This document shows positions 12,060 to 45,103 of a stretch of DNA of 64,000 bases, in pieces. The number at the start of each line of letters is the position of its first letter. The first letter of the stretch is position 1. The notes under the pieces were generated by a model that saw only the letters and a program-made list of their open reading frames with translations, was not told the DNA's origin and did not search any database. Source of the DNA: Penicillus capitatus (Eukaryota; Plantae; Chlorophyta); NCBI GenBank assembly GCA_965649825.1, contig OZ287697.1, positions 2,032,351-2,096,350 on the forward strand, given 5' to 3'. The position numbers were made by a program, and so were the translations under genes.

Positions 12060-12101
12060 AGACGCAAAACGAGAGAGATACACGATAATGTAATTACACG
12101 C

Positions 12102-13568
12102 ATGTCTCATCGCGGAGGGCGTTCTATGGGTGTACGACAGTCCGACCGACACATGGAGAAATGGAAGGACAGCTGCTGCCTGTCGACCCCGCCGACACTC
12201 TATCCCGTCTGTGACCCGCTGCCGACGGCAACGACTTACGAATTGATCAATCTCCTCTCGTCGGATTCGGACGAAGACGCGTCCAATGTGCTCTATCAGT
12301 CGATAACGAGATTCGCGAGGCAGTGCGCGATAACGTGTCGCGAGGCGCAGGCGGTCGAGTCGCTGCGGTCCCGTATTGAAGATGAGGCGAGGGAAGTGCT
12401 TCATGGCTGTCGTGCGGCGTTGTTTGGTTCGAAAGCGACGGGACTGTCGCTTCCCACCAGCGATATCGATGTCGTCATCCTCGACACGCCTTACGACATC
12501 TTTGCCCCACGAGAGTCCTTCTCGGCCGCACAGAGACACGAGATATGCACACACCTGTCTGTTCTGCAACGCGGGCTGATGTCGCGAATGCGAACGTGTG
12601 GTGGGAAATTGATTCGGGCAAGGGTTCCCATTCTGCGCCTCGAGATGCCGTCGGACGACATGATCTTTCACGTGGACATCTCCATCGGTGTCCGAAACGC
12701 AATCGATGCGGTCGGCATGATTCGAAGCTATCTGACAGCAAATCCAGCAATTCTGCCACTGTTTGTGGTGCTAAAGGCCCTGCTGAAAGAGAGGGCGCTG
12801 AATGAAGTCTACAGTGGAGGGATGTCGAGTTATGTCCTGTTTACGACGGCATGTGACGATTTCTCTCGCCATTGGATGTTGAACATCGTCGTAGGTCGTG
12901 GCCCACCTCATGATGGAGAACGTCTTTCGCCCACCAGAAGAACACCATCGTAACGAAGAAGAATTCGCCATGGAGACACAGAGCGCTTTCCTCATGAAGC
13001 TCATCTCAAAGATCGACTTACCATTGGACACACTACTGAAGACGTTTCTGTCACGGTAGAGGTATTGGATGCTGGACGTCCGTGATGAGGGTGTGCGTGG
13101 ATGCAGCTTTGGTAACTGGGACGCGCGATTTGCCGTCAGTTTACAAGGTCAGGGGAAGATACCTGTGGACAAGCTGCCGTCTGTGATCGAGGGACGGGTG
13201 TTGCAAGTGGAAGATCCGCAGGTGTGATGGCGTCGTTGTTAGAGAAGCGCTCGTTGGTGTTGCTGTAGGCAGCTGGGATGGATGCATCGAAAGGCTCTTT
13301 TGCTATGGCTCAGATCGTGGAGGTCTTCAAAGAAACGGGCGAGAAACTGGAATCCTGCGTCGAAACGGCAGAGACATCGGCGGCCAAAGAATCCTTCCCC
13401 ATCCTCAACCGCATCATGGACTGCAAGGCTTTTCTGAAAGGACCAGAAACGGTGCAGAAGAAGAAGCGAAGCCGAAGCTCGGTCGATCACAAGGGCAACC
13501 GAAAAAAGAGACGAATGCGATGGTGGCGATCAGGTAAGTCAAACGGAAAGAACGATAGCCATACATAA
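12102..13568 (+). CDS. TRF4/PAPD5-like non-canonical poly(A) polymerase, multi-exon
   Basis: Pol-beta NTase motif FGSKATGLSLPTSDIDVVI, RARVPILRL, LNEVYSGGMSSY, LQVEDPQ. Confidence 0.85.
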
Positions 13569-13605
13569 AGACCCTTTCTGTGAAGTCTGGACGACCATCC
13601 ATCCA

Positions 13606-14946
13606 TTATTTAAGAAGTCTCAGGCAACTGTGGTCGATCGCGATGATGTCTTTGATGTTCTTTCTGAGTTTTGTGCAGAGCACCTCCAGGGGTAAGATGC
13701 CAAAAGGCTCTTCAATTTGCACGCCGATCTCTTCGATGCCCACAAGGAGCGCCGCCACGAGCGGTATGATAACGACGATCCCCCAGTTACACGTCTGCCA
13801 AAAAGCAAAGGGCAGCCAAGTCAACCAGATCATCAGAAATCGCGTCGTGTGCCTAGACACAGACGATGCAGCAGGGAGACGATGACAGGTGCCTTGCCTG
13901 GTGTAGGAAAGAGGAATAGGTGTTGTGTAGATACGTTCACAGCCGCCGATAATATCTTCAAAGATGGTCAAATTATTCTGCAGCTGTAGCTGCTCCACTT
14001 CGTCCATGTTGCTCCTCGCCAACAAACGGGAGAGCATTTGGAGACAGAACATAGGTTTGTGTGGACTCTCCATCTGCACAGTCACATCATCCGTCTCTAG
14101 AATCCGTTGGATCCACAGACAGTGATCACACCAGGAAATGCATCTCGGATGACGTGAGATCATTCGAGAGTAGATCTGGAAGCTGATGCTCCGTACGCAA
14201 TGTCCACATGAGGGAATAGCTCAAAGCCATGAGCCATTTGGCAACGAGCTCCGTATCCTCCGCATCCGGAGCAAAGATCAAGAACTGCACCATGACCATC
14301 CATACAGTACTCGACTCGCATGCGATCGACTTAAGGATGGATGCTGCACTTGACGCAAGAGATCTCTCGAGCGGTTCAGTAATGTCCCCCACAGTTCCCG
14401 CGCCTCTTGCCATCGACGGTAGCTGTTGGTGGTGCGGTAAGCCAAGAGGAGGGACAGAGCAAACGAAGCCAGTCCTGTGATGTCTGGATCTGGAATGGTT
14501 AATGTTGGTAGGAAGGATGGCAGGAGTCCATCGACCAAAGCCGTCTCATAGCATCCCACCACGGCGGACACACTGGCCACCCAGATGACAGGAGGCACCA
14601 CAGACGATGCAATTCTCGATCTGGCATCTCACACATATGTCACACATCCAGATGCGTCACATCATGACGTCACGATGGAATATTGAAGATGTTTCTTGTG
14701 TAGCGCTCTGAGCTGCGATATCTGGGCCAGTCGGCTGGAGAGAACGTCTAGGACAGTCAAGCAAACGTCACATCAGAGTTTGAGGTGTCTGACCCCAACC
14801 TGTCGGCGAAATCGTCGTCCTTCTTCTCTGTCCCGGTCGAATGGACTCAGTTCCTGAAGACCGTCATGCCGGACGTCGGTTGGGGTGGCGGCGACAACAG
14901 ACAGACGCCGTGAATGGTGAAGCGCGGTCGTCGTAATCGACGTCAT
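13606..14946 (-). CDS. Chloroplast bestrophin-like anion channel (UPF0187, VCCN/BST type), multi-exon
   Basis: Ser/Thr/Arg-rich N-terminus, TFSPADWPRYRSSERY, YRTTNSYRRWQEARELWG, IYTTPIPLSYTR, GIEEIGVQIEEPFGILPL. Confidence 0.9.
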
Positions 14947-14976
14947 TTCTTCGCATGTCCATCCCCATCCACTATC

Positions 14977-17900
14977 ATGAATGAAGGCTTACTCGAGGCC
15001 CTCTCCACTCTCTACCACCATCCAGACCAACAGGAGAAGAAACGCGCCTCGCTGTGGCTGGAGGAATGGCGATTGACAACGGACGCTTGGAAAACGGCAG
15101 ATGGGATGCTGCACAGCGCCACGCGCAATGTCGAGGTGCTCTTCTTCTGCGCGCAGACACTCGTATTTAAAGTAGGCTAACACGAGAACCGACGTCCATG
15201 TCTCCCTCATCGCTGTATGCGCCGTGGCAGATTCAACAAGATTTTGAAGAATTGCCCTTCGATGAGGTGCCGCAGTTGAGGGACAGTCTCGTGACGCTCT
15301 TGGTGAAATTTAGTCGAGAGGAGGGGATGGAAGTTGTGCGGAAGCAGTTGGCATTAGCTATCGCTGCTTTCTGTGCTCATGTGCCTTCTTCTTTCTGGGC
15401 ACCCTCCAGATGCGTCTCCTGGATGGCTGAGCGTTTCTGGCATGAAAACGACGTCGCGTCTGTTGTCAGTCTGATGGAACTGCTCGTGGTTTTCCCCGAG
15501 GAGGCGAGGAACGATCGCATTGGACTGCATCCCAAGCGGCGCACACAGTATAGGCAAGAACTGGAGGAGAGCCTTCCACAAGTGATGGAGATTTTGGAAA
15601 AGTGAGAAAAGAGTGAGAATTGATGTTTTGCTGATGTGACGTCCTGTTCAGATGCCGTTCCATGGCCTCCATCGAACAACTCTTAAACGCCATGGGCAGT
15701 TGGTTAAGCCTCTGTGAAATGTGTGCGTTGCAAGGAAGCGAGGCAACCATGGAGGTCTTTGTGCAGTTAGCCACAGAGGCATTGGAGAATCCAGTCACTT
15801 TTTCTGCAGCGGTGGATTTCTTGTCGGAGCTGCTCTACGTCACGGGCAATGCGCCGTATCTCCCGGAGATGAAGGAAGCGACAGAAAGGGTGGCATCTGC
15901 TCTCATTCATCGCCACGCTCCGCAGCTCACGCAGGGAACAGTGGATGAGGATAGGAAGCCAGGACTGGCGCGACTGTTCTGTGATCTCGGATTCTTTCAT
16001 GAAGAGCTTGTCCTGACACAAGACGAAATGTCCTCCGCCCTTATCGGGGCGATTCTTGCTGTCACATCCGATCCCGATGAAGATGTTCACCAACATGTCT
16101 TTGATTTCTGGGAACGGTAAGATCCTCTCCGTTTCCGCCGCCGTTGCATAAGAAATGTCATACCGGGCGGCTAGACTGGCATATAGGGTGGCCCATTTGA
16201 TCAAAACAGAATCCCTAGCGTCGCAACGTGTGGATTACTATCGATCGATTTTTGAACGATTTACGACGGCACTTGTGGAGCTCGCAAAGTGAAGACGATG
16301 ATCATTTCATGGCTGCTGTTGGCTGACGTGTGCCCAAAGGTTGCCCGAGGACTATTTGGAGATGTCCTCAGAGGAGAGACGTGAAGTGAATCGTCGAAAT
16401 ATTTGTGTGGCAATGACGGATGCCGTCGATGTCCTTGGCGATCAACGATCGTTGCAGTCCCTCATCTCTGCCCTCTCCAATGCCTGCCAAGGAGGAACAG
16501 AGAACTGGCGACAGATCGAGGCATTGCTCGTCGCCATCGAGGCCATCTACAGCGGCTGCAGGAAGTGCAAGACAGAGATGGTGGGGCCACTGTTCCAAAC
16601 ACTTGGCGCCGTTCCCGATACTCCCGTCACCCAAGCCGCCATGTGTGAGTGTCTCGCCACTTATGCTTCCTGGCTGCCAGATTTGGCCGAGCAAACGGGA
16701 TCCGATCCCCTCGTCATGCTCCTTCCTGTGATCTTCAAAAATATGGCGCGGGCAGAATGGGCTGCTTCGGCGGTCGATGCCTTCGTGGGTCTCTGTAAAC
16801 ACTGCCGTCCGCATCTCCCTGCTCACATCCCAGAGCTGCTGGATCTACATCAACAAGTGCTGCAAGCTGCAAATGCTTTTCATCAGTGGATCCCTGCTGA
16901 CTCTTCTGAATTCTTGATGAAAGAATCCGATGCGCTTGAAGTGATGACGGCGCTCATTCACGGAATGTCGCGTACAGAGAACAAAGAAGTCGCCCGTCAG
17001 TTTCTCTGGACATTGTCCGAAGGCATCCTACAAGATCTCAACGGAGCTCTCGAATCTCTTCACTCTCCCACGCAACATCTCGAAGCCAAGCTGCAAGTCT
17101 TTGTGGCGAGATTGAAGATCGTTTTCAAAGGAAACACCATGAGCGTTATGTCCGCTCAGCTGCTTAGTAACTTCTCTGCCTCACGATTCTGGGCAGCTTC
17201 TGAGAAATGCATTTCTAGGTCAAATCTGTCCGAGTCTGCTCCAACTAGCCGACAGAGCTGCCAATCACTGCACTCTGGTCGAAGAAATCTCTACATGTCT
17301 CAGATATGCCGTCAAAGGCGCTGGACTCTTCGGATTCGAGACGCTGCCAACATTAGCCACTGCTTTGCCTCAGCTTTTCTCTGCCACACATTATTGTGGA
17401 TATCTTTACGTGGCGAGTGAGATCACAAAGATCTATGGACAGGAATCCGCCCATGCTTCTATTCTTCATCGCATGGTGACGGATCAGTTCTCCGTTGTCT
17501 GCAATGTCTTCCGAATGCCTTCCGATTTTACGGAGCATCCCGATCTGGCAGACGATGCGTTTCTCATGGCAGGTCGTGTGCTTAGCTATTGTCCCGAGGC
17601 TATGCTCAGTCACATCACACTTCTCACGGAGACGTTGGATACGGCAACCAAAGGTGGGCACATGTTTCGCACGTCACATCATCACATGCATGGCATGGTG
17701 GTGTACTAGGCGTGCTTGTTCAGCATGAAGATGCATGTCGTTCGATTTTGAGATTTCTGTCGCATTTGATGGAATACTATTGGCATCGAGATACTCTCCG
17801 AGAAGTAGTGGCCCCTCGAGGCGCCTTCCTTACACAGTATCTCACACCTGTCTTTTCATTTCTCACTCTTTTTTGAAGGGTTCTTATGGCGGGTGTGGTC

Positions 17901-18194
17901 GGAGGCTTGCCTCTAAGGGTACTTGATGATGTCGGCCGAACACTTCGTTCTATCCTCGTCGCTGCTAAAGATTCGGCTGTGGCCTGGATTTCACAAATTT
18001 TGGCTAAATTGCCCAATGCTGTTCTCAGTTCTCAGGAGAAGGCGACATTTGTCGAGAACGTCCGTTCGGATGAGGTTCATAAATCCGAGCGGACGTTTCA
18101 GCGTTTGATTGACGACTTTGCTGACATCTGTCGTCGCAGTCGCGTCGTCCGACAGGCGGCACAGTCGGCTCTGATACCTGAAGGCTATGTTTGA
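14977..18194 (+). CDS. TNPO3: Transportin-SR / importin-beta (TNPO3, MOS14-like), multi-exon
   Basis: EALSTLYHHPD...DAWKTAD, FFCAQTL, QQDFEELP, HPDLADDAFLMAGR, C-terminal FADICRR. Confidence 0.9.
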
Positions 18195-18232
18195 TGTGAC
18201 GTTTGTAGCAATAGCGTTTGTCACTCCCGACG

Positions 18233-19816
18233 ATGGCAACCATCGCCAAATGGTATTACCTCGACGCGAACAACGTTCCGACCGGTCCCCTCTCAACGAC
18301 GGGACTCGTGGGTGATGGCCAACCACTCCCTGTTCGCACGTTTACCCCGAACGAACACACAGGAAAGCTCGATAGTGGTGAAATGACGCGGGAAACGCTC
18401 TGCTGGTGTGATGGACGTGAAACGTGGCAATGTGCTGAAGACATCGCCGAGATTCAAGCAGCGTTGGGAGCGCTGCAGTCACATCCAGCCAAGTACACTA
18501 TTAGGCCCACCCACCCATAACTGATGTGACGTCTCTACTTTGTACTTTAGACGAAAGGAGGCCGATAAGCCAACCGTCTTCGATAAAGTACTGACAGAAA
18601 TGGAGGAGACAAAAGAGGAGCGGTTCGTGGATGACGATGGGACGTTGTATGTCTGGAACAAAGATATGCAGAAGTATGAGCCCCAAGACAAGACGTACGA
18701 TGTCGAATCGATGACCTTTCGTGGAAACGATGAGACAGTTCCGTCCCTGACGGAGACTTTGAAGAAAGCATCGGCGAAAGTAGGACGATGGATGAGGTCA
18801 GACAGACGATGCAGTGCACAGTAGGCAGAAACCAAACGCAAGGATGCCCCATCGGATTGGTCGGATCCCAAGAAAACGACATCGGTCTACGTCACAGGTC
18901 AACCCAGAGAAGAGGCAGATATGTGTGACAAAGGTATGGCATAGGATTGCCCGTCAATGCGACGGTTGAAGAGGTCGCGGTGCTCTTTTCGAAGTGTGGC
19001 ATCCTGAAAGAGGATGACGACGGTGTCCGTATCAAACTCTACAAGTCCAGCTTCTCGATAGCTTCCTTCTTGAGTGATCGGAAAAGTGTGACCGTGTGGA
19101 AGGGATAGGGAGAGTGGTAAGCCGAAGGGGGATGGACTGGTGACGTACATGAAAAGGCCGTCAGTCGAATTGGCCATCACCATTTTGAACGGAACACGAT
19201 TTCGCGAGAACGTGCGACAGACAATGACGATCCAAGAGGCAGAATTCGAAATGAAGGGCGAAACCAAAGCCAAGAAAAAACAGAAGACGAAGAAATCCAA
19301 AAAGGCATGTCCTTGGCCAATCGACGCCGTCTGTTGAGACAGTTCCAGGGAGGACGACAAGACAAGTTGCTGGGATGGGCTGGATTTGATGATCACATTT
19401 CCTCACACAAAGTTACGGTTATCCTTAAACAGATGTTTCGCCCGGAGGAGATTCGAAACGGAATCGTGACGAAGGAGGAGCTCAAAGAGGATGTCGAGAA
19501 TGAGTGTGCGAAGCTGGGCGAAGTGGATCGCGTCGTTGTCTATGGAGAGAATGCAGAGGGCGTCATCTCCGTCCGTTTTCGGCACGAGGAGGCAGCAGAC
19601 GTCTGCATCCAGCGCATGGACGGACGCTTCTTCTCCAAACGTCGCATCACAGCGCACAAATGGGGTAGACACAACCGTGCGACCAACGACACCACGTGCC
19701 GTGCCGTGCTGCCTCTAGATGGGTTCACGAAGTATCACAGAGCTCCAGAACCTGATGTGGTGCAAGACGAGGAAACTCGATTGGAGAAGTTTGCTCGAGA
19801 TCTGGAACAGAACTGA
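18233..19816 (+). CDS. Tat-SF1/CUS2-like splicing factor with N-terminal GYF_2 domain
   Basis: WYYLD...GP and LCWCDGRETW (GYF_2); RRM with FSKCGILKEDD, KGDGLVTYMKRPSVELAI; UHM with ECAKLGEVDRV...GRFF. Confidence 0.85.
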
Positions 19817-20192
19817 ATGTCGTGTCAGTCATCCCGTCGTGTCTGTTGTGGATCAGTTCGAGTAAGAGGATTCGTTCTTTGCATCAGCATCGACTCAGTT
19901 GTCACACAACTCATCCTTTCCACCACACTGCTCACTCTTTGTGCGTTTGGATCGGCCGATCGATCAGACGTGCGTGAAATCGTCATCGGAGTGGATACGT
20001 GCGCATCCACATCAGCGTTGGACTTCTGAGAGGTATCATCATCATATCGAAGCGATTGAACGTTGGCGTCATTGAAAAGCCGTCAGTACCACAGCCAGAT
20101 ATTTAAGATCATTATCACAATGCTGTGATTCGCCAAAAGCAGAGATGCATCACACGGCATAAAAGAATCCAGATGTGACAGGGACGAGGAGA

Positions 20193-21596
20193 TCAGGCGA
20201 GTTTTGCAACATCGATGAGTCTCTGTACAACACGTTGTGTGCCGACATCCATCGTGCATTCTTCGTACGGCAAGCCATGTTTGGCACAGAGCGCCTTGAC
20301 TGCCACTTGTGCTTTTCTGAGATTGTGCCGCGGCATGGTTGGGAATAGATGGTGCTCGATTTGATAATTGAGACCGCCCATGAAGAAATCAACAAAGGCA
20401 GAATGAACAATGTCGCGTGTGGAGATCACCTGCGCCGTCACAAAGTCCTTTGCCTCTCCATAGATCTCCATTCCGTTATGGCTCTGCACAAATGCCAGAC
20501 CCAGCATGAAACCTGACAGTGCTTGACTGAGGAGAAGAAAGAGCATGGCTTTGGTCCACGGCAGAGCCAAGAGAGCCATACCAATATGTATGCCGTAATG
20601 CAAACAGATTAAGAGGAATTCTGTCACTCCATGTCCCACACGGTATCTGTGTAGGGCATGACTGAATGATTGCTGTGCCCAGCTGAAACGCGCTAACAGA
20701 AGGATAGGGATAAAGAAGTGGTGTTGATAACGTATAAGTGTCCTCTCTGTCGGAGAGGACAATGTTCCCAGCATCTCAGCGCTCCATGCAAGCAAGGGCA
20801 ACGTATCGATGTCTGGATCCACAGCTGCATGATCTCCACTGATTTCGTTGGTGGCAGCATGGTGTGTATTGTGTTTCGATTTCCACCAGTTGACGCTAAA
20901 TCCTTGACAGATATTGCCAAAGAGATAGCCGCAGAGGTTGTTCCATCGACGGTTCTGGAAGACTTGGTGGTGGCAGAAGTCATGGGCCAGCCATCCCATC
21001 TGCTGCCAGAAGAGAGCCAGCAGAAATGCTGCCATGAGAAGGGCACCCCAGCCATCGGATGCAAAGAGGAGTGCCGCCATGGAAACGAAGATTGCGAAAT
21101 TGAGACAGGTCTTCCAGGCATAGAACAGAGGATCAGCTCGAAACATCCCCTTCTGCATCAGCTTCGTCCTTAGAGCGCGAAAATCGGTCAATAGCGTCGC
21201 CGTTTCGTCACTCAGCTGCATCGGCTCGGGCGCCAAATCGGCGATGTAGTACTTCTTGAGCGTCGTCCATGTCGTGGCGGCGTGAAAGGACGTAAAGATC
21301 TCAGTGGCGTCGCGACCTGCCTGCGTCAACAGCACCTCTCCGCCGGGGTGGATAGGTAGAAAGGATGTGACGTCATAGACTTTGCCCTTGATGATCATCC
21401 AGCAGTCGTGACGCCGATTGTGATGGGCCACGTCGTGCTTGGAGAGACGATCGTGGCGGCATGTTGGTTCGTGCAGAGCGCTGTCAGAGAGAGAACGACG
21501 CGGGTCGCCACCTGAGACCTTCCGTTGACTCTTGGACACGGAACACTTGACGAATTCGAGGCAGGCAAGCCAGACACAGCGAAAGAGGACGAGCAT
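20193..21596 (-). CDS. Cytochrome b5-fused front-end (delta5/6/8-type) fatty acid desaturase, intronless
   Basis: HPGG heme motif; His boxes HDFCH, HNTHH, QIEHH; start codon could be slightly different. Confidence 0.95.
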   Translation of the reverse strand: MLVLFRCVWLACLEFVKCSVSKSQRKVSGGDPRRSLSDSALHEPTCRHDRLSKHDVAHHNRRHDCWMIIKGKVYDVTSFLPIHPGGEVLLTQAGRDATEIFTSFHAATTWTTLKKYYIADLAPEPMQLSDETATLLTDFRALRTKLMQKGMFRADPLFYAWKTCLNFAIFVSMAALLFASDGWGALLMAAFLLALFWQQMGWLAHDFCHHQVFQNRRWNNLCGYLFGNICQGFSVNWWKSKHNTHHAATNEISGDHAAVDPDIDTLPLLAWSAEMLGTLSSPTERTLIRYQHHFFIPILLLARFSWAQQSFSHALHRYRVGHGVTEFLLICLHYGIHIGMALLALPWTKAMLFLLLSQALSGFMLGLAFVQSHNGMEIYGEAKDFVTAQVISTRDIVHSAFVDFFMGGLNYQIEHHLFPTMPRHNLRKAQVAVKALCAKHGLPYEECTMDVGTQRVVQRLIDVAKLA

Positions 21597-21664
21597 GGCT
21601 CTATAAAAGGTGTGCTCTACAGCAAATGACGGGAACGTGAGGTTCGGTGCAATGATGTGACGTT

Positions 21665-23206
<1,542 letters not shown>

Positions 23207-23522: not shown

Positions 23523-24553
23523 TCAACCATGTGCCACTTTCACGATAGCAGGCGCTTTCAAAACAAGACAGAACGGAATCTTCTTCACGGGGCAACAATC
23601 CGGATTGCATTTCTCGCCCCAAGCGCAGAGCTTGTCATAACATTTCACTGGCTCTTTGCACACCTTCACTTTCTTCGGCGTACAGACCTTCTCGTGCACG
23701 ACATCGCAGGACTCTTCGTTCTTGCAGACATCCTTGTATGCATCTCTGCACTTCCACACGGGTACTTTCTTGCAGACTCTTCGACGGATAGGCTTGCAGA
23801 CATGATCCTTCTTGCACTCTTCCTTCTCATCGCACACCTTCACCGGATGACAGCCACCCGATCTCGCCGTGGTGTCAACATTGGCTCTCGAGAAGGAACC
23901 CCTAGCCAATGCATGGCCGCTCGCTTTTGCCGCTTGGTTTCCGGCGAAGGCCGAGCCACGTGCGATGGATGTTGAATGGCCTCCTTTGGCAACGGCAGAG
24001 GCTGCTGTTTTGGCAACGCTTCCACCCGTGCACTGCTGTTTCGTATAACACTTCGGTACTTTGTGGCAGTTCACAACATCTTTGCACTCCTTGTCGTGGA
24101 CATATTCACATTTCTCTTCTTTGACCCAGTCGCAGACTTCGTGCTTGACGGGATGGCAAACCGGTTTGACGGCGCACACTTTCTTAGGCACCGTATCGCA
24201 GACGTCTTGCACGTGATACACGCAAAACTCGGGGTCTTTCACACAGTAGCCAGGATGTTGTGGACAATAAGGAAGGCACGTGGAACCGTAGGAGACGCAG
24301 CAACGGCCTTTTGGCCAAACACACGATGCGTCGCACCCTGCACGACATGACTTCGCCTGTGTCCTCCCAAAAAACAATGCACCTACCGTTATCGCCATGC
24401 CAGTCCTTGCAGTTTTCTGCGGTGATCTTTGAGATATCGCTACCGGCATGGACGCGCTGCCAAGAAAATTCAGCAAAGGGAAGAGTCAGCAATGTCCCTG
24501 ACCTGGGTCACGAGGCAGAGCACCAGGAGAGACAATGCGGTCAGGAACTTCAT
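23523..24553 (-). CDS. Secreted Cys-rich protein A (34 Cys in mature chain, mirror-symmetric Cys ladder), 3 exons
   Basis: Signal peptide MKFLTALSLLVLCLVTQ/RVHA; 46- and 49-nt GT-AG introns; Cys gaps 7,7,5,7,7,7,5,5,5 - 59-aa loop - 5,5,5,7,7,7,5,7,7. Confidence 0.85.
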
Positions 24554-25140
24554 CGTCGTCAAGGGAGCTCGCACGGCTTGAGGTGGAAGAGAAGAGGGCG
24601 TAGGATAAACGAGGATCGACAGTGGCCTTTTATGGCCATTCGCACGTTCGACGGATCGGTTGACAAGGACAGCAAAGACTCGTGACCGTACGAGGACGCT
24701 GACGCAGAGATGACTGACTGTGTCGACGAGGCGACAGCACCCGCCAGCTGTGTAGCACGTGCGGTCATATGACCTCGTTACAACCGTCGCCTCTTCACCT
24801 TCCTTTGCGACGGTAATCTTGAGCAAATGCCTAACGTTGCTGGCCGATCGTTCAGCTGCCAGAAGACAACGAATGATATGCAAGCACTCCCAAGGGGTAT
24901 CACCTCAAGGAGCCAATCCACTGACAAAGAGCAACGGAATGTATGCATCCTGATATGTCAGGCAGTCAGCAATGGTGTCTTCGACGGCCACGATCGATTT
25001 TTGACAAATGCTTAATGCCTGGCACGTGCATGACAACAAAGAATCGTTTTTCATAGGTTGGTATGTCATACAACTAATGAACACAGTGATTCTATCATGA
25101 GAAGCAGCGTCTTCATTTTGTGGATATGCATTTCGAATGC

Positions 25141-26040
25141 CTAGCGAACACAATGCGGCGTCTTTTCCTTGGAACAGCATTCCTTCATGCTGCATCTCTC
25201 TCCCGAGGCACACCATTTCCCACCACACATGACTGGAGGTTGACAAACCGTCTTCTCGGTCGTTTTGCATTCTTCTCTTTCAACGATTCTGCAAATGTTA
25301 GAAATTCCGCACGTTTGTATAGGAACGGTTTCGCAATGTTCTTCTGGGACAGCTTTGCACACTTCTACTGGTGTGCCCTCGCAGACATTCTCTATCTTAC
25401 ATGTCTGCACATCTTCACACGTGTAGATTCCGTCACACGGAGGAGGAGTATCCCCCGGCACTGTGCTGTTGTGATTTGCTGGCCACGAGCGGTCTCTTGA
25501 AGAAGAATCGCTACTGGAATGTGGAGAGTCAGTAGGGCAATCGTTTTTCCAGTGGCAACTCGGTGTTGGTTCGCATTTCTCAACTTGATAGCATTCCTGC
25601 TGCTCGACAGTTTCACACTTCTCGACGTACTTCGTTTCGCAGGTCTCTCCTCTTGAGGATTGGCAGTTCTCATCTTGCGTACACACTTCTCCGCTCACTG
25701 GGATACAGACCGTTTCGGGCACAACGCTGCAGAGACTGGCATCCTTGACGCAGGTCGGACAAGGGTTACACACGCGGGTGTGCTCGACGCAGCAACGTCT
25801 GCACGGTCCATGGCATCCTAGATCGCATGCGTTACCCGAGACTGTACGAGACAGGCAGACGCACCGCCTGGACCACGCCACTCTTCGCAGCGTTGTTCGC
25901 GCTCTCGTCTGTCTCGAATGCGGTCGGCAAGTGCACTCTGTCATCACCGTTGCGTCCGAACAAGAATAGCGAGGTGCGCGTCTTACTTGCACGAAGAGGC
26001 AAAGGACAACAGTAGATAACGCGTATCGGTGAATGTCCAT
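25141..26040 (-). CDS. Secreted Cys-rich protein B, tandem paralog of A, 3 exons
   Basis: Signal peptide MDIHRYALSTVVLCLFVQ/SALA; introns at homologous positions and phases to A; same ladder spacing and Cys count with a 33-aa loop. Confidence 0.85.
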   Translation of the reverse strand: MDIHRYALSTVVLCLFVQVRRAPRYSCSDATVMTECTCRPHSRQTRARTTLRRVAWSRRCVCLSRTVSGNACDLGCHGPCRRCCVEHTRVCNPCPTCVKDASLCSVVPETVCIPVSGEVCTQDENCQSSRGETCETKYVEKCETVEQQECYQVEKCEPTPSCHWKNDCPTDSPHSSSDSSSRDRSWPANHNSTVPGDTPPPCDGIYTCEDVQTCKIENVCEGTPVEVCKAVPEEHCETVPIQTCGISNICRIVEREECKTTEKTVCQPPVMCGGKWCASGERCSMKECCSKEKTPHCVR

Positions 26041-28549: not shown

Positions 28550-30429
28550 ATGCGCGCGATTCGCACTACGACTGTCGAAGGATGGCGTCGATCGATCCTC
28601 GGCAGCGGCATTCCGCGTCGTCAGATGTCTCACAAGATATCTCACCGCAATGTCTGCCCCGTGCAAGCCAACTCCTCTCTGTCGTTTGAGAAGGTCCTGG
28701 TGGCAAATCGAGGAGAGATCGCTGTCCGTGTGATCCGAGCCTGTAAAGAACTGGGACTCAATACGGTCGCCGTCTACTCGACAGCCGACACAGAATCTCT
28801 CCACGTTAAAGTACTGCGACTCACCCTACCGTGCAGAAACGATGTGACGTCTGGGTGCTCCAGATGGCAGATGAGGCGGTCTGTATTGGAGATGCACCGA
28901 GCAGCGCATCCTATCTTTACATTCCTTCGATTCTGACGGCGGCGTTGAGTCGAGGAGCCGAAGCCATTCATCCAGTAATGAACAACTAGGTGATCATAGG
29001 GACAGCAATGCGCGCTTAGGGCTATGGATTTCTCTCAGAGAATGCAGGATTCGTGGACATGTGTGTGGATCATGGACTGAATTTCATCGGCCCGACATCA
29101 AAACAGATTCAGACGATGGGCGACAAGGCAACGGCCCGTGAGACGATGAGGGTCACACAAACAACAGAGGAACAGCAAAATTGAATGATGACTGACCACT
29201 AGGCAGCAGGTGTACCAACCGTACCTGGCAGTGATGGTCTTGTCAAATCCGAAGCCGAAGCGCTCGAAGTTGCTGCACAAGTTGGCTATCCTCTTATGGT
29301 CAAGGCCACGGCAGGTTATGATCTCACTCTTTTGTATGAGAAAAGAGTAATGGTGTGTTAGGGGGTGGTGGCCGAGGGATGAGACTCGTTCAAGAAGAAT
29401 CACAGTTTCTGAATCTCTTGCGACAGGCAAAGCAAGAAGCGGAAGCTGCTTTCGGCAACGGAGATGTCTACATCGAACGCTTCGTCCAGAATCCACATCA
29501 CATTGAATTCCAGATTCTGGCTGATAAACATGGCAACGTTGTGCATCTCTTCGAGCGTGACTGTTCGATCCAGCGACGCAATCAGAAGCTTCTGGAAGAA
29601 GCACCCAGTCCAGTCATCACACCCGAGGTACCAACCATCTCACTCTTTTTTCCCTTAGCTGTGGACTGCGTATCAGGTCCGTGACAAAATGGGCGAAGCA
29701 GCTGTGAATGCTGCAAAATCGATCAACTACGTTGGTGTGGGTACCATTGAGTTTCTCTGGGAGAAGAAGGGATTCTATTTTATGGAGATGAATACGCGCA
29801 TCCAGGTCGAGCATCCAGTGACGGAGATGATCACCGGGATTGATTTGATAAAGGAACAGATCAAAGTTGCCAGCGGGGAGCACTTGCCTTTCACTCAGGA
29901 GGATATCAAGTTGAAAGGGCATTCCATCGAATGTCGCATCAACGCTGAAGACGCTTTCAAGAATTTCCGACCCAGTCCAGGACGCATCAAGGAGTACCTG
30001 CCTCCTGGAGGGCCCTGCGTGCGCATGGACAGTCATCTCTACCCATCTTATCTCGTCCCCTCACACTACGATTCCCTCCTGGGAAAACTCATTGTCTGGG
30101 CAGAGAATCGAGATCAGGTCACTCTTCTTCACGTGTGAAAGATCGATGTTCTGGAGGCTGTCTGTTGATATTCTTAGGCCATCGTTCGAATGAAGAGGGC
30201 ATTGCAGGAGTGTGTGATTGAGGGTGTGCCGACGACAGCTCCCTACCACAAGCTCATCTTAGAAACAGAAGATTTTCAACAGGGCAACATCGACACTGGA
30301 TTTGTCCTTTCGCACGAAGAGGAGCTAGGAACGCCGCCGGACGAGAACTGGAGGGTGAGACTGGAGACAACGAAGTCAAGGAGCGCGAAAAGACACGAGG
30401 AGAAGTCCGTGGTCCATGTCATGGGCTGA
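28550..30429 (+). CDS. accC: Biotin carboxylase subunit of plastid heteromeric acetyl-CoA carboxylase, multi-exon
   Basis: Transit peptide then [73 protein letters not shown]. Confidence 0.95.
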
Positions 30430-33098: not shown

Positions 33099-36000
33099 AT
33101 GTCTGTTCGTGCAGTTCTAGGGATTGCTTCCTATGCGGAGCCTGCGTTTCACAGAGCCTTTGGGAGCATCGGCATCTCCGTCTCCCGCCGTCCGCGTCTC
33201 ATCATCGCTCTGTTCGTCGCCGTTCTCGTCGCTTTCTGCGGTGGACTCTGGACGTTCGATACGGAGATAAGAGTCAACGAACTTCTCGTCGCCCGTCGCG
33301 GTCGAATCGACGGGGAGAAGAACTACTTCATCGACAACTTCGATCTCATCTCTCCCGTCCTGAACTCCGTCATCGTCACGCCAAAGCCCGGCGTCGACAT
33401 CTTCAGCACCGACGCCCTGGACGAGGTCTATGCCCTGCAGGAGCAGATTCGAACGTTTGCGTTCGACTACAAGGGCCGCCAAGTGTCGCTGGAGCAGTTT
33501 TGCTTCAAGACGGTCGATGGCGATCCCGCCGAGCCGTGCTGGCAGACTTCGTTGCTCGAGAGCTTCCGCGAAGGGGCCGTGTTCAACGTGGGCGGCGAGA
33601 ACAATACTGACTACGCGGTGCTCTTCCAGGCAAAGCCGTCGTACCGAGACTTCAACTTCAGCCGAGATCTCACGCGATCGTTCATCGCGCAGACGAACCT
33701 GAATCCAGATTCGCTCATGCTGGGCGGATTCGAAGTGGACCCCGAAGATCAGGATACGATCACGCACGTCGGCGCTCTGCAGATTCTTTTTGGTTCCTCG
33801 TCTCCCAAGAAGCTGCGGCAGAGAGGACTGCAGTATTACGAGTGGCGAGAGAAGGAGGTGAACGAGGACGCGTGTTCCAATCCCTCGACGTGCGTGGAGT
33901 GTGCCACCAATCTCCAGGCGACGGCCTTTGTGGCAGCCGGATGCACGATCGACGGCGCCGCATCTCAACCTCAGAGCTGTTGCGATGTGGCGGCCCCTGT
34001 CCGTCAGAGTCCTTGCGTCGAAACGATCTTTGAACTGCGCCCGGAAGTGGCGCCAATTGCCAACCAGATCTTCACGGCATGCGGTTTGACGGCTGTCGAA
34101 GTCCAGCCTCGGTGCCAGAATCTTGAGCGCATTGTCGGCGAGAGAGCGGCTGCGACGACACCGGAAGTGTGCGTCTGCCTTGCGGGTGCCAGCGATGCGT
34201 GCACGACGGCAGCCACAGCCTTTGTAGCAGAGAATCAAGAGTATCAAGAAACATTCTTAGCCGCAGGAGGAGGCGACGAGGATGCCATCGCCGAAATGGG
34301 ACGCTTGCTGGTCGAAGAGGTCGGGTGTCCGCTGCCAGCCGAAGCCGATGCCGATGCCGAAGAGGAACCCATCTGCTCGTGCCTTGCGGATGCCACTTCC
34401 ACAACGTGCACAGATGCCGCCCTCGCATACGGCCAAGAGAATCCGGATCAAGTCGGTCTCTTCGCGGCGGCTCTGGAAGGCGACACCGATGCTCAGACAG
34501 AGTTGGGTGCCTTGCTGGTTTCGGAGTTCGGCTGCGAGGTCCCCGAATCGACTGCCGATCCAACTTCCACTGAAGCTCAGCCGCAAGTGGCCGACGCGGA
34601 CACCCCGATCCAGTACGAAGCCATCGTCACCGAAGTCCGAGATCTCACCGACACCATCGACAAAGCCAGAGATCTGGTGCACGAGTGGGAGAAGGCGTGG
34701 AGAGACGGCATGGACGATGTCGCCGCTCGGTTCCAGTACATCAACGTCGTCTGGCTGACAGACAGTTCAATCGACGACGAAGTGGAAGCGGCGGCCCAGG
34801 CGGAATTCGGTCTCTTCTTCTTGGGCTTTGCCCTCGTTCTGGTGTACATAATGATTTTTGTCACCCTAGACTGGAAGCCGACCGGTGTACGTCTGGCATA
34901 CAATCCACCAGGACCTGGCATCTCTGCCCTGTGCTTCTTCATCATACTGCTTTCGGTGGGGGCAACTCTGGGCGTGGCCGGATACATGTCGTCCCTCACC
35001 AGTTTCAAAATCTCTTCTACCACAGTCCAGATGGTGCCGTTGCTGATGTTGGGTCTGGGCGTGAATGATTTCTTTGTCCTGTGTTCGGCTTTCAAGTCCG
35101 TCTTGTTGCGCCCAGACCGTCCTGCAGGCTTAGAAGGAGTCATGTACGAGGCCATGGCGATCGGAGGCACGTCCATAACTCTCTCATCCGCCACCAACGC
35201 CGTTGCTTTCGCTCTCGGCACCCTCAGTCCTGTGCCCATTGTCCTTTGGTTCAGTGTCCAAATGACAGTCGGCATTGCCATTGCCTACATCGTCTCGATC
35301 TTTGCCGTTCCCAGTCTACTCTCCTTCGCCGTCCGTCGTCACCTCGATGGCGAACCAGATTTTTTGCTGGCGCTCTTTGGCGTCCGTCTGCCAGAGCCAT
35401 CCGTCCAGGAGGAAAATGCGCAGGAAGAGAAAGAAGGTGTCTTTTCTCAGACGATTCGCAGTTTCCGCTGGCCGCTGACCTTTTCCACCTTCGCCGTCTT
35501 CGCCGTCTGGATGGCGTTTGGCATCTACTACACGATTTCGTTCGAACAGGGGCTCGATTTGAGTGAGTCTGTGTCCCCGAAGAGTTACACTTACGATTAC
35601 CTCACAACCTCGGAAGACTACTTCGACACGTCGCAGATCAACATCGTGTTCCGAGACTCCGTCGACTACACAGACCCTCAAGAGTTTGAAGCGGCCAGGC
35701 AGTCGGAGTACGAATACGTTGATGGAGGATACCGAACAGAGGAGCGGCTGATGTCGCAGTCGTGGATGGATTTCTACACGCAGTATGTCGAAGCGAAGTT
35801 CTGCTCGAACGAGATCTGCATGGACGAAGTGCACTGGTACTACGATGGCTTCTCCTCTGCCGATTTTGCGCATCCGTCGAAGAACATCTGCGCCGGCGTC
35901 GCGTCAGCCGAAGAGTGTGAGCAGAGGTGCGAGACGCATTGTCCGCAGGCGGCAGTCGGAATGAGAGAACGGTGCCAGTACAAAAAGGACTCGATGGAAT

Positions 36001-36881
36001 GCTACTGCCCTTATCGACCAATGCTGACACAGCGCAACTTCTACGAGAACCCCGAAGGCTTTGACAGCAAGATCGAGAGCTACTGGGTGGATTTCCTGAA
36101 CAACACGGCGACCGGACGTGCATCCAGAGTCTTCATCAACCTGGACGAGGAGACGACGACGGAGAGAAACACCTTCGGCACGCCAAAGGGCACGCGGTCG
36201 TACGTCTATGCCAGAGGCCTCACGAGCGTGCCCAGTCAACTGGACCACCTCCAGGAGGGACGCGACATCCTCGATCGACAGACGATCGAGGTCTATCCGT
36301 TCGACTACGTGGTGTATGCCATCGGCGAGCAGTACGAAGACCTGGCGTTGAAGACGGTAGAGGCGATAGGCATCTCCATGGCTGTCGCGACGGTCGTCAT
36401 GCTGCCCCTCATCGTCAACGTCTTTGCCGCGCTCATCGTGTCTGTCTGCGTGCTGCTCTCTGTTTTGCTGACGGTTGGAATGACCAGTTGGACTGTTATC
36501 GATCTGGATTACTCTGCCTACGTTGCTTTCATTGTGACGGTTGGGTTGTCCGTGGAGTTCTGTGCGCACATTGCTCGAGATTTCATGTTGGCCGAGGGGG
36601 ATCGTCTCACACGTTCTATACACGCGCTCCAGACTATGGGCATTGCAGTATTCAATGGCGGCGTGACGACTTTTCTCGGAATTCTGCCCTCTGCTCTTTC
36701 AGATTACCCAGCCATTAGCAATCGTTTGTTCGTTCAGTATTCCATTTCCACTATCGCCGGCATGTTTACGGGCCTGCTCCTCCTACCGACCATCCTGTCC
36801 CTGATTGGACCTCCGTCCTCCTCCCCCGAGGAACCGAATAAAGATGCCAAGGATCCGCAGAAAGGAGCAGCACAGCCCTGA
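33099..36881 (+). CDS. Patched/NPC1-like RND sterol-sensing-domain membrane protein, intronless, 1260 aa
   Basis: Uninterrupted ORF; SSD with LMLGLGVNDFFVL and ITLSSATNAVAFALG; second half VGLSVEFCAHIAR and GIAVFNGGVTT; two large Cys-rich lumenal loops. Confidence 0.9.
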   Translation: MSVRAVLGIASYAEPAFHRAFGSIGISVSRRPRLIIALFVAVLVAFCGGLWTFDTEIRVNELLVARRGRIDGEKNYFIDNFDLISPVLNSVIVTPKPGVDIFSTDALDEVYALQEQIRTFAFDYKGRQVSLEQFCFKTVDGDPAEPCWQTSLLESFREGAVFNVGGENNTDYAVLFQAKPSYRDFNFSRDLTRSFIAQTNLNPDSLMLGGFEVDPEDQDTITHVGALQILFGSSSPKKLRQRGLQYYEWREKEVNEDACSNPSTCVECATNLQATAFVAAGCTIDGAASQPQSCCDVAAPVRQSPCVETIFELRPEVAPIANQIFTACGLTAVEVQPRCQNLERIVGERAAATTPEVCVCLAGASDACTTAATAFVAENQEYQETFLAAGGGDEDAIAEMGRLLVEEVGCPLPAEADADAEEEPICSCLADATSTTCTDAALAYGQENPDQVGLFAAALEGDTDAQTELGALLVSEFGCEVPESTADPTSTEAQPQVADADTPIQYEAIVTEVRDLTDTIDKARDLVHEWEKAWRDGMDDVAARFQYINVVWLTDSSIDDEVEAAAQAEFGLFFLGFALVLVYIMIFVTLDWKPTGVRLAYNPPGPGISALCFFIILLSVGATLGVAGYMSSLTSFKISSTTVQMVPLLMLGLGVNDFFVLCSAFKSVLLRPDRPAGLEGVMYEAMAIGGTSITLSSATNAVAFALGTLSPVPIVLWFSVQMTVGIAIAYIVSIFAVPSLLSFAVRRHLDGEPDFLLALFGVRLPEPSVQEENAQEEKEGVFSQTIRSFRWPLTFSTFAVFAVWMAFGIYYTISFEQGLDLSESVSPKSYTYDYLTTSEDYFDTSQINIVFRDSVDYTDPQEFEAARQSEYEYVDGGYRTEERLMSQSWMDFYTQYVEAKFCSNEICMDEVHWYYDGFSSADFAHPSKNICAGVASAEECEQRCETHCPQAAVGMRERCQYKKDSMECYCPYRPMLTQRNFYENPEGFDSKIESYWVDFLNNTATGRASRVFINLDEETTTERNTFGTPKGTRSYVYARGLTSVPSQLDHLQEGRDILDRQTIEVYPFDYVVYAIGEQYEDLALKTVEAIGISMAVATVVMLPLIVNVFAALIVSVCVLLSVLLTVGMTSWTVIDLDYSAYVAFIVTVGLSVEFCAHIARDFMLAEGDRLTRSIHALQTMGIAVFNGGVTTFLGILPSALSDYPAISNRLFVQYSISTIAGMFTGLLLLPTILSLIGPPSSSPEEPNKDAKDPQKGAAQP

Positions 36882-37459
36882 TGAATGTACAGATATCATT
36901 GGGGCGCATCTTGTTATTCTTTGTTGTTGTGTTCCTTTTGCGAGTCAGTGCGTTCGCTCTGATGTGTTTTGCCATGAGTGTTTTTTTATTGCATGTGGTA
37001 TGGGAGACATAAACAATGATGAATGATAAACGATAACGACCGACGTGAGTTACGTTCGTTGATCCATGTGTCGACGTTCGTTAGAACACGCGACATCGTC
37101 GTGCCAAGAACAAGCCGCCGTACATATTCAACATTCAATCTGTCATATCTGAACTCTGCCATTGTAATGACTTTGTGTGTTATGATATTCCTTTAACCGA
37201 ACAATCATGTCTCATCGTCTCGGCAGAAATTCAACAGGTACTGACGATGGAGAATTCACAACACGCAGCCGATACGTAATGTCGAACATAGATGTTGCAC
37301 TCAATATGTCCGACGGAGCCTGCTGTGCTTACAGCTGTGCTCACTATCACTCTTTCACTGACAGCTATGCTCACTCTGTCACTCTCTCACTCGCAGCCAG
37401 AAACAACACTTCTGTCGCGGAACTGTGGTCATAGCCGGAGTTAATATGGTGTCACACTT

Positions 37460-39120
37460 TCAGTAACTTCTATTACAAGTTAAAAACTGTACATATGACA
37501 ATGCACAAGATTTATTGAAAGTCTGAATGGAGTCTAGCAATTTCCGGCGGATTTCTTCTGTCACTCCAGGTATGTCTCTAAACGCAAGTCACACACCAGA
37601 AGGTGATCAACTTGGACAGATAGACAGAAAAAGGCTTACGTGGTGATGTCTATGGTTCTCCAGCTATCCGCATCTCCATCTTTCTCCCTTAGTTTGCAGC
37701 GTTCCTTGATCTCTGCAAAATCCGGCTCGGGAGAATTTTTCCTTAGATTTCCAAAGACATGACAGGCTGCCTCTGGAGATGATGACCAAATCAACCTGCA
37801 GAACACAAAACAAACTCTGTCATGTTATTTAAGAAGCATCATTGTAGATTACCCGTAGGTTGGAAAATGATGCATCAATAAGAAAAGACGGGAAACAATA
37901 CTTTTAGATGAGATCGGCACAATGAGATCATCATCTAACAGGGGCATCCGCCTCCCATTCAACTCGATGTGCAGCATCGGGGTCTTGAATCTCTTCTTCA
38001 TGGCGGCCATTTGCTTGAAGATTCTCTTCGAGTTGAATGACCCGTGAAAATCTGTCACCGTTTTCCTCTCGATGACGATGTCCGGGGTCAATACATAGTC
38101 CCCCACCTACCGTATTTCTTTTTATGTTTTTGTGATGTTTATTACTCATTGTCTTACCTTCAGAGTCGATGCTCGGAGCCTAAAGTTTGCATAATCTAGT
38201 GCGGCTGGGAGTATGGCTCTAAACTCGCGGATGTCAATGACAACCTCCCCTCGCCTCACAACGTCCTATCATGGCAGATTCTCTTTTCTAGCACATATTT
38301 TGATATGTGAGTGATGCATTACCAAGTGCAGATCGAATCGTCTTTTGATGTCTAGAGAGAGGAGAATGTACTCCTTGTTGTCCTCTATGTCCTTAAAGAC
38401 ATTCTCCTCTCTCTCTGCTGCATCCGTCATCATCATCTCAATGTCGATGTCGGCCACCACCGATGCCCGAGAACGTAGCCAAAGGGAGAGCTGCCGAAGA
38501 TGCAACAACTCCATGACCCCCTTTGCCTAAATCTCACACATTTAACAAAATTTTTCACACTGCTAAACAAAACCTTGGTGAATCCTGCTTCATTTGAAGC
38601 AGGATTGTTGCTAATCAGATGAACAAACCCTTGAGGGTTGCCTCGATGGAAGAGGCGCAAAGAAAATTCGATGCCGGAGTGTCGGAACACCTCTACTGGA
38701 TCGAAAAATAAGATCCCAGCAAACGCGCCAGGATTGATCTCGTGCTCCAAGAAGTCGATTAGCAGAATGAGTGTGGTCACGAAACACACACTCCCTTTTT
38801 GGTAATGCTCATGTCGCTTCTTCTGCGACATTTTGTCCTTGCTGAGATCGACCGGTTTTGATCCCGAGGGATCTTGGCGGCCGATCTCATTGCTCAGAGC
38901 TTCTTTCGTTGACTCTGAGCAACCAACGAGAAGCACAGCCCCTCGTTTCCTTGATGGCATGGGTGCGGAGAAAGGCCTTGACGGGTTTTGTCCACCCGAT
39001 GCCGGAGCCAACAACGAAAGGATAGCTCGGAAAAACTGCTCCTGCGGGATTTGCCGCCAATGACACCGCACACAACTCCTTCGCACAACTGAACCGAAAC
39101 TCACGGAATTCTTCTGCCAT
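37460..39120 (-). pseudogene. XPF: XPF/ERCC4 (Rad1/UVH1)-like endonuclease, internally deleted, with a frameshift
   Basis: N-terminal helicase-like piece (VTTLILLIDFL, FSLRLFHRGNPQGFV, LRQLSLWLRS), nuclease VIDIREFR...VGDYVLTPDIVIERKTVTD, HhH DIPGVT; +1 frameshift in a G run at 38939-38942. Confidence 0.8.
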
Positions 39121-44964: not shown

Positions 44965-45103
44965 TTTCGCTTTTTGTTTGGTGTAAACAGAAGCTTAAAA
45001 GGGAACGTCAGATACAAATAACCTAATGCTGTTTCTTTAATTTATATCGATGATGTGACCCTTATTAGTCACCGTCCATGTCGTTCAGCACTCTATCCCG
45101 ACA
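44965..45103 (-). repeat. 3' LTR (139 bp), overlapped by the last 12 pol codons and the stop
   Basis: Exact direct repeat of 49569-49707. Confidence 0.95.

Follow-up and report, generated by a model that had tools for sequence, protein, structure and literature searches.

What fold, and what role, would call for cysteines (Cys) whose spacing reads the same from either end? The question is raised by two neighbouring minus-strand genes, here called A and B, which lie at positions 23523-26040 of a 64,000-nucleotide window of contig OZ287697.1 from Penicillus capitatus (the window being the whole stretch of DNA that was analysed). The explanation favoured here, that both genes encode secreted structural rods built as a cystine-laddered beta-hairpin, is considered probable as a whole. 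The architecture, consisting of a signal peptide, a base drawn from the two termini, a long disulfide-laddered hairpin and a variable tip, appears highly likely from the sequences and the predicted structures, and the function as a structural spacer, strut or cross-linker outside the cell or in the wall is proposed tentatively. To our knowledge, cross-strand disulfide ladders are known only from peptides of ~20 residues with at most four disulfides.

Mirrored cysteines in two tandem paralogues

Each mature chain holds 34 Cys, of which 20 belong to the ladder, with 8 before it and 6 after it. In both proteins the position differences between successive ladder Cys are 8,8,6,8,8,8,6,6,6, followed by a central step of 60 (A) or 34 (B) and then by 6,6,6,8,8,8,6,8,8, and all ten mirrored pairs have i+j = 346 in A and 306 in B. 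An earlier note on this DNA had described the palindrome as gaps of 7,7,5,7,7,7,5,5,5 and their mirror image, which is equal to the position differences given here and is confirmed. With the gap multiset held fixed, the probability of the mirrored order is 1/126. The heavy divergence of the intervening residues that the note had remarked on is also evident, as only 20 of the 110 arm residues other than Cys are identical between A and B. The mirror in A and B is real and not a product of chance. Tandem duplication is disfavoured as its source because duplication gives a direct repeat and not a mirror image.

The two genes are arranged as follows (aa, amino acids; nt, nucleotides; pI, isoelectric point).

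24553-23523, minus strand: gene A, the basic paralogue, 311 aa, mature pI about 8.8, three exons
24553-24503, 24456-24387 and 24337-23523, minus strand: exons of gene A, stop codon included
24502-24457 and 24386-24338, minus strand: introns of gene A, of 46 nt and of 49 nt (phase 1, GTAGGT...GCAG)
26040-25141, minus strand: gene B, the acidic paralogue, 267 aa, mature pI about 5.2, three exons
26040-25987, 25937-25865 and 25817-25141, minus strand: exons of gene B, stop codon included
25986-25938 and 25864-25818, minus strand: introns of gene B, of 49 nt and of 47 nt (phase 1, GTGCGT...CTAG)

The coordinates under which the tandem spliced paralogues had been reported prove exact, with 23523 the final base of the gene A stop codon, 26040 the A of the gene B ATG on the minus strand, and three exons in each gene. 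Exon 1 is short in both, carries a signal-peptide-type core (MKFLTALSLLVLCLVTQ in A, MDIHRYALSTVVLCLFVQ in B) and terminates at a GT donor. Intron 2, which was chosen by enumerating every frame-restoring GT/GC...AG pair, has the same phase (1) and the same G/G-C position in the two genes. Its length of 49 nt in A and 47 nt in B is accepted because it matches the sizes of neighbouring introns (47-59 nt in the biotin-carboxylase and tyrosyl-tRNA-synthetase genes) and agrees with P0003, an intronless homologue. P0003 is continuous over the intron-2 junction (...CEEWIGDGGCHVDC...) and spans both junctions of the A and B models (...DKCEEWIGDGGCHVDCKFPDKCCV...); in a tblastn comparison with gene A, its residues 1-17, 28-38 and 37-317 fall on the three exons. 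The previously reported count of 34 mature Cys behind a signal peptide stands only with the 49-/47-nt intron 2, and the signal peptide itself is read from sequence.

Two other gene structures were rejected. An intron 2 of 19 nt (A) or 23 nt (B) yields an odd total of 35 mature Cys and would give A and B disagreeing phases, and the other local introns are 46-59 nt long. A two-exon model lacking exon 2 leaves poor signal-peptide cleavage sites, and the allelic single-nucleotide polymorphisms (SNPs) that A and B carry in this exon leave the protein unchanged only when read in the exon-2 frame. These alleles lie on a second contig (L001) of ENA metagenome assembly ERZ25074695, in which the window belongs to contig ctg340117_38x_l (249,770 bp). 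L001 is 98.9 % identical over 20.9 kb to window positions 13518-34403 and probably represents either the other haplotype or a strain that co-occurs (coverage 21x vs 38x). In its allele of A, exon 1 differs by an indel of 3 nt that keeps the frame and falls within the signal peptide, exon 2 by one synonymous SNP and the 49-nt intron 2 by two SNPs. Its allele of B has a lone change at 25893, at a third codon position and synonymous in the exon-2 frame (worked out by hand). No Cys is altered in either gene. As a separate observation, several introns of neighbouring genes (29310-29330, 29635-29655, 30118-30130) share a motif like (A)TCTCACTCTT a few bases past the donor, and intron 1 of gene A has a similar one, CTGACTCTTCC.

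The encoded proteins divide into the following parts (pLDDT, predicted local distance difference test).

24445..24553, minus strand: A signal peptide, residues 1-21, spanning intron 1; likely cleavage VHA/G, read from sequence
24225..24444, minus strand: A base, N-terminal half, residues 22-78, 8 Cys, spanning intron 2
24030..24224, minus strand: A ascending arm, residues 79-143, 10 Cys at 8,8,6,8,8,8,6,6,6; AlphaFold2 strand 79-143, pLDDT 83-90
23853..24029, minus strand: A tip loop, residues 144-202, 59 aa, Ala/Gly/Ser-rich, Cys-free, net charge +6, low pLDDT
23658..23852, minus strand: A descending arm, residues 203-267, 10 Cys at 6,6,6,8,8,8,6,8,8; AlphaFold2 strand 203-267, pLDDT 75-91
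23526..23657, minus strand: A base, C-terminal half, residues 268-311, 6 Cys and a non-conserved tail
25926..26040, minus strand: B signal peptide, residues 1-22, spanning intron 1; likely cleavage ALA/D, read from sequence
25732..25925, minus strand: B base, N-terminal half, residues 23-71, 8 Cys, spanning intron 2
25537..25731, minus strand: B ascending arm, residues 72-136, 10 Cys, net charge -8
25438..25536, minus strand: B tip loop, residues 137-169, 33 aa, Ser/Pro-rich, one N-x-T sequon (NST)
25243..25437, minus strand: B descending arm, residues 170-234, 10 mirrored Cys, net charge -7
25144..25242, minus strand: B base, C-terminal half, residues 235-267, 6 Cys

Both likely cleavage sites lie at the beginning of exon 2, the N-termini of the homologues are conserved in the alignment, and no transmembrane segment is evident in the A or B sequences. 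The arms of A carry net charges of +1 and +7, in addition to the +6 of its loop.

Covariation and predicted structure of the ladder

When 1.84 billion cluster representatives were searched exhaustively with a HMMER profile, the only true members proved to be A and B (as alleles), together with P0003 (320 aa, E 1e-38) and P0004 (198 aa, E 2e-14), so that just two clusters were added to A and B. Further members were sought by a word-index search (allele only), a profile search (nothing new) and a scan of JGI metagenome contigs (none). Contigs of 0.9-1.4 kb from the run assemblies ERR9592231 and SRR28002496 and the JGI samples 3300008030 and 3300008031 encode P0003, P0004 and close variants of these, none of them named. 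The two of these contigs that were read, L003 and L004, have 5' and 3' untranslated regions and no introns, consistent with the homologue contigs being transcripts. By these searches, the A/B family is very rare, lineage-restricted and unnamed. All four proteins have a signal peptide, 8 + 6 terminal Cys and mirrored arms of the 6/8 type, and their ladders compare as follows (position differences).

A and B, 10 rungs: 8,8,6,8,8,8,6,6,6 / loop / 6,6,6,8,8,8,6,8,8
P0003, 11 rungs: 8,8,6,8,8,8,6,8,4,6 / 71 / 6,4,8,6,8,8,8,6,8,8 (71 is the innermost Cys-Cys difference)
P0004, 7 rungs: 8,8,6,8,8,8 / 5 / 8,8,8,6,8,8 (5 is the innermost Cys-Cys difference)

In the alignment, the proximal six gaps and the 8 and 6 terminal Cys are conserved in all members, and length change is confined to the distal end, where it affects both arms together. 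Across the family, mature chains range from 177 to 299 aa, arms from 47 to 71 aa, ladders from 7 to 11 rungs and tip loops from 4 to 70 aa, with P0004 joining its innermost Cys by CKKGVC and having no tip loop at all. The mature Cys total is even in every member (34 in A, 34 in B, 36 in P0003 and 28 in P0004). Judged from the aligned sequences, a rung gained or lost on one arm is matched on the other, akin to compensatory change in an RNA stem. The profile search that the earlier note had proposed thus finds the mirror kept in two further members with 11 and 7 rungs. Local C(i)-C(i+1) pairing, which the note had set against nested pairing, is not borne out by the data, as the 11 and 7 Cys per arm of P0003 and P0004 are odd numbers and make purely intra-arm pairing impossible.

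Within each arm all Cys-Cys distances are even, so all Cys of an arm would lie on one strand face and share one pair type. The prolines (Pro) in the arms of A, B, P0003 and P0004 stand without exception at Cys parity (23/23; naive p about 2e-9), and 82 of the 97 Val and Ile residues in the same arms stand at the opposite parity. Cross-strand disulfides are favoured at non-hydrogen-bonded pairs, where the backbone NH faces away from the partner strand. Since the NH there faces outward, Pro would be tolerated at Cys parity without loss of an inter-strand hydrogen bond, and it is proposed that these edge prolines also cap the free edge of the ribbon against sheet growth. The CKKGVC of P0004 fits such a ladder, with a K-G turn, a hydrogen-bonded K:V pair and then the first non-hydrogen-bonded C:C pair. 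In the arms of A, Val alternates with Lys and the non-Cys face is Lys-rich; that of B is rich in Thr, Glu and Val. Both ribbon faces bear many Lys, Glu or Asp, and neither is uniformly hydrophobic. The mirrored register of A also sets Trp111 (CDWVKEEKC) opposite Trp235 (CKKVPVWKC) at a Cys-parity position, and the two residues would form a cross-strand Trp-Trp pair like those stabilising designed hairpins.

In the AlphaFold2 model of A, the strands occupy residues 79-143 and 203-267, each beginning exactly at the first ladder Cys of its arm and ending at the last; the loop and base are of low confidence. The model of P0004 has strands 69-116 and 119-166 (pLDDT 83-87) joined by a two-residue turn, K117-G118, with a base of around 80. 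The antiparallel hairpin put forward in the earlier note, with 65 residues per arm and Cys on one face, is supported by the mirror covariation, by the residue parity and by the AlphaFold2 model that the note had called for, in which the strands coincide with both arms of A at pLDDT 75-91; the disulfides themselves are inferred.

In the proposed mechanism, once the signal peptide is gone, the two termini would together make a small Cys-rich base, whose 8 + 6 Cys presumably give 7 disulfides. The shaft would be a single beta-ribbon with two antiparallel strands of 65 residues each; its Cys, paired at constant i+j, would make 10 cross-strand disulfide rungs, spaced every 6 or 8 residues on one face and at non-hydrogen-bonded positions, and the tip would be a variable low-complexity loop. 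The disulfide face would hold all the prolines, and the opposite face Val with a stripe of Lys or Glu. The covalent staples would make this a rod resistant to proteases, with a width of about 1 nm and a length of about 20 nm; by simple arithmetic at ~3.3 Å per residue, the shaft would be about 15, 21 or 23 nm long for 7, 10 or 11 rungs. The 21-22 nm given in the earlier note is likewise an estimate, and the scaffold, adhesive or wound-sealing roles that it suggested are conjectural. Rod length would evolve by symmetric addition or removal of rungs adjoining the tip. The base would anchor or oligomerise the rod, and the charged shaft and tip would contact partners.

The tip loops show features of their own. 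Those of A and P0003 (residues 145-214 in the latter) both open with GGSVA and are Ala/Ser/Gly-rich, with stretches in which Ala or Ser occupies alternate residues, such as ASATADASATG; the P0003 loop, which follows a Lys-rich shaft, is also rich in Asp. Such loops resemble silk-like, beta-forming low-complexity sequence and could support tip-to-tip association.

Known proteins and rival explanations

Searches of Pfam (E <= 10, and also E <= 1), NCBIfam and PDB sequences assigned A and B to no family. Foldseek searches of PDB and BFVD gave no PDB match at E 0.001 and two BFVD matches that just reach it, with template modelling (TM) scores of 0.06-0.19; the top rows were very long hairpins that serve as staves of pores or phage tails. 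The earlier failure to name a family is thus upheld by the lack of any Pfam, NCBIfam, PDB sequence or meaningful Foldseek match. Literature on palindromic Cys spacing or long disulfide ladders yielded short beta-hairpin peptides only.

Among known proteins with some likeness to the A/B family, the granulin/epithelin module has roughly symmetric Cys and packs a disulfide rod of stacked short hairpins, CC doublets included, into about 55 residues. It differs in being a stack of short hairpins, whereas the A/B family would form one continuous hairpin; there is no Pfam match to granulin, and each base half has one CC doublet vs four in the 12-Cys motif. The rod-and-knob hydroxyproline-rich glycoproteins of green algae are secreted proteins with a rigid, glycosylated polyproline-II shaft of (Ser/Thr)-Pro repeats and a globular end. 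They are comparable in their design of shaft plus end, and the B tip loop is Ser/Pro-rich. However, the A/B shafts are rich in Cys, Val, Lys and Glu with isolated Pro, and A and B match no Pfam domain of the pherophorins or of these glycoproteins. Stems of the aerolysin/lysenin type and the phi29-like tail knob have very long two-stranded hairpins in common with the A/B family, but these lack disulfide staples and are stable only as barrel staves. A and B show neither a significant fold or sequence match to aerolysin-type pore-forming proteins (Foldseek E >= 6e-3, TM about 0.1) nor a lipid-facing hydrophobic face. Beta-hairpin antimicrobial peptides are 16-25 aa long with one to four disulfides, of which theta-defensins have three and hepcidin four (PMC13001179). 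Protegrin, tachyplesin, gomesin, arenicin, theta-defensins and hepcidin resemble the family in having one antiparallel hairpin with cross-strand rungs and Cys on one face (predicted here), and some of them are cationic. The A/B family departs from this class in size and, in part, in charge. They share no sequence homology with it, and the family differs in its arms of 47-71 residues, its 7-11 rungs, 14-Cys base, signal peptide and tip loop, and in the acidic character of B. The theta-defensin is moreover a head-to-tail cyclic molecule of 18 residues with 3 disulfides, whereas A and B are linear chains of 267-311 aa with 10 rungs, the termini of which would form the base.

Three rival explanations concern how the arms are paired or packed. 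Mirror spacing is equally compatible with antiparallel pairing between chains, and the loops, long and flexible at 33-70 aa in A, B and P0003, would permit a swap, so that domain-swapped dimers or covalent polymers could build a fibre or network. This is quite improbable, given that the four residues between the innermost Cys of P0004 (CKKGVC) force an intramolecular hairpin and that the AlphaFold2 hairpins of A and P0004 close within a single chain. It is very improbable that the Cys pair locally within each arm or bind metal, which would render the mirror structurally meaningless. Although A and B do carry an even 10 Cys per arm, the 11 and 7 of P0003 and P0004 and the symmetric indels that keep the mirror argue otherwise, as do the Pro and Val parity expected of a two-stranded ribbon and both AlphaFold2 models; metal binding is further at odds with secretion and with a C-x5/7-C spacing unlike the CxxC of metal sites. 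Least probable of all is a set of staves in an oligomeric beta-barrel forming a pore or tube. Its best Foldseek matches are indeed long-hairpin proteins of pores and phage tails, but these are insignificant (E > 0.001, TM about 0.1-0.19), and the outward edge positions of both strands hold prolines that would block lateral hydrogen bonding. A free-standing ribbon is favoured over a barrel stave because of these edge prolines and the charge on both faces. An alpha-helical coiled-coil hairpin, suggested by the mean spacing of about 7, was rejected, as steps of 6 and 8 do not fall on one helical face, Pro recurs regularly in the arms and AlphaFold2 yields strands.

The remaining rivals keep the ladder architecture and change its role. 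The flat periodic face might bind ice, carbonate mineral or sulfated or acidic wall polysaccharide, with the paralogues charge-tuned to separate ligands. The regular 6/8-residue repeat of the ribbon, the opposite net charges of A and B and the contrast between the Thr/Glu/Val-rich non-Cys face of B and the Lys-rich one of A would suit such a role, yet there is no Thr-x-Thr type ice-binding array, and the Pfam, PDB sequence and Foldseek searches showed no similarity to ice-binding or biomineralisation families; surface binding therefore seems unlikely. A role in defence is judged distinctly unlikely. By analogy, the protein would be a giant version of the cationic beta-hairpin antimicrobial peptides, in which the Lys/Val-rich shaft of A disrupts microbial envelopes or binds the anionic surfaces of epibionts. 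Those peptides are cationic hairpins with 1-4 cross-strand disulfides (PMC13001179), A is itself strongly cationic (arms +1 and +7, loop +6; pI 8.8) with Val and Lys alternating, and defence genes commonly show tandem duplication and fast divergence. Against this, the architecture is conserved irrespective of charge, with B acidic (arms -8 and -7) and P0004 near neutral; neither face is uniformly hydrophobic; and 177-299 mature residues with a conserved base are far above the size of any known peptide of this type. An A/B heterodimer through charge complementarity was rejected, with 9 opposite-sign vs 13 same-sign pairs at equivalent arm positions.

The structural rod has points against it as well. 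Because the four proteins share a common origin, their parity counts are not independent, and the p-value given above overstates their independence. The AlphaFold2 predictions were made from alignments of 7 sequences and have low predicted TM scores (pTM 0.25 and 0.37), and the base of A is poorly modelled. What the rod measures, how the base folds, where the protein resides and what it does are inferred, as are the disulfides. A is basic and B acidic, so that a single charge-based mechanism cannot serve both, and the function finds no guidance in neighbouring genes or in a domain of known activity. The mature pI values of the family (8.8 in A, 5.2 in B, 6.0 in P0003 and 5.2 in P0004) nevertheless bear on the choice among roles: because the geometry is conserved while charge flips and the tip is dispensable, the rod itself is suggested to be the functional element. 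Defence and surface binding are thus ranked lower than the structural strut.

Genomic setting and wider palindromic pattern

Other genes of the window include an ammonium transporter at 2298-3290 (-), a cytochrome-b5 front-end desaturase at 20193-21668 (-), a SIR2-family deacetylase at 21932-22552 (-) and a Patched/NPC1-like sterol-sensing protein at 33099-36881 (+), and no functional link of the ladder genes to any of these four is evident. The best named matches of the desaturase are chlorophyte (Bryopsis sp. 54 %, [Myrmecia] bisecta and Lobosphaera incisa 55-56 %, and Ulva), followed by streptophytes; from this one gene, placement of the host among the green algae is reasonable. The gene order desaturase - importin/TNPO3-like - bestrophin - MTPAP-like nucleotidyltransferase - WD40 (about 10800-21700) is conserved on contig L007 of run SRR33785045, where the desaturase is 62 % identical and the contig stops at that gene, short of where the ladder genes would be expected. 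Positions 35575-49214 and 50361-64000 form a 13.6-kb direct duplication at 99.9 % identity, which carries a Ty3/gypsy-type reverse transcriptase, RNase H and integrase at 45065-47983 (copy at 59851-62769) and a gag-type aspartyl protease at 48013-49569 (copy at 62799-63944).

Palindromic Cys also occur in proteins outside the A/B family. The weak matches of the profile search, P0006-P0009 (E about 1e-6, via the repeat only), are palindromic as well and have 5-17 rungs. P0006 reads 8x14,6,8,[9],8,6,8x14 (17 mirrored pairs), P0008 reads 8x8,6,8,[9],8,6,8x8 (11 mirrored pairs) and P0009 reads 8,12,16,8 and then 8,16,12,8. P0006-P0008, which are bacterial, are centred on CRG(A/T)PPNQTC and built from the unit C-x-x-V-P-x-x-V-C, an 8-residue grammar that they have in common with the A/B family along with the palindrome. 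P0006-P0009 differ from it in their C-terminal non-Cys domain of about 250 aa, in domain context and in lacking the algal 8+6-Cys base, and Pfam, NCBIfam and PDB sequence searches gave them no family annotation. P0008 (L009, 6001-7068) is a probable bacterial lipoprotein: its signal is of the lipoprotein type, and its gene, flanked by methylmalonyl-CoA mutase and by gidA/gidB/parA, sits on a bacterial contig of 438 kb. The likeness of these proteins to A and B may reflect homology or convergence within a wider unnamed architecture. It is possible, and put forward with some reserve, that cystine-ladder ribbon rods of 7-17 rungs are a general unnamed design for extracellular struts, stapled every 6-8 residues and using the shared C-x-x-V-P-x-x-V-C unit, in green algae, bacteria (the lipoprotein family of P0006-P0008) and perhaps animals.

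If so, A and B would be the first recognised members of a natural, length-programmable scaffold, a thin, stiff and protease-resistant rod of ~20 nm made without coiled coils, collagen or polyproline. Its sequence grammar is simple, with Cys and Pro at one parity, Val at the other and length set by the number of rungs, which would appeal to protein design for molecular rulers, spacers and display stalks. The bacterial palindromes suggest that a scan for palindromic Cys spacing could reveal a wider hidden class. For algal biology, these genes would add a new class of secreted or wall proteins.

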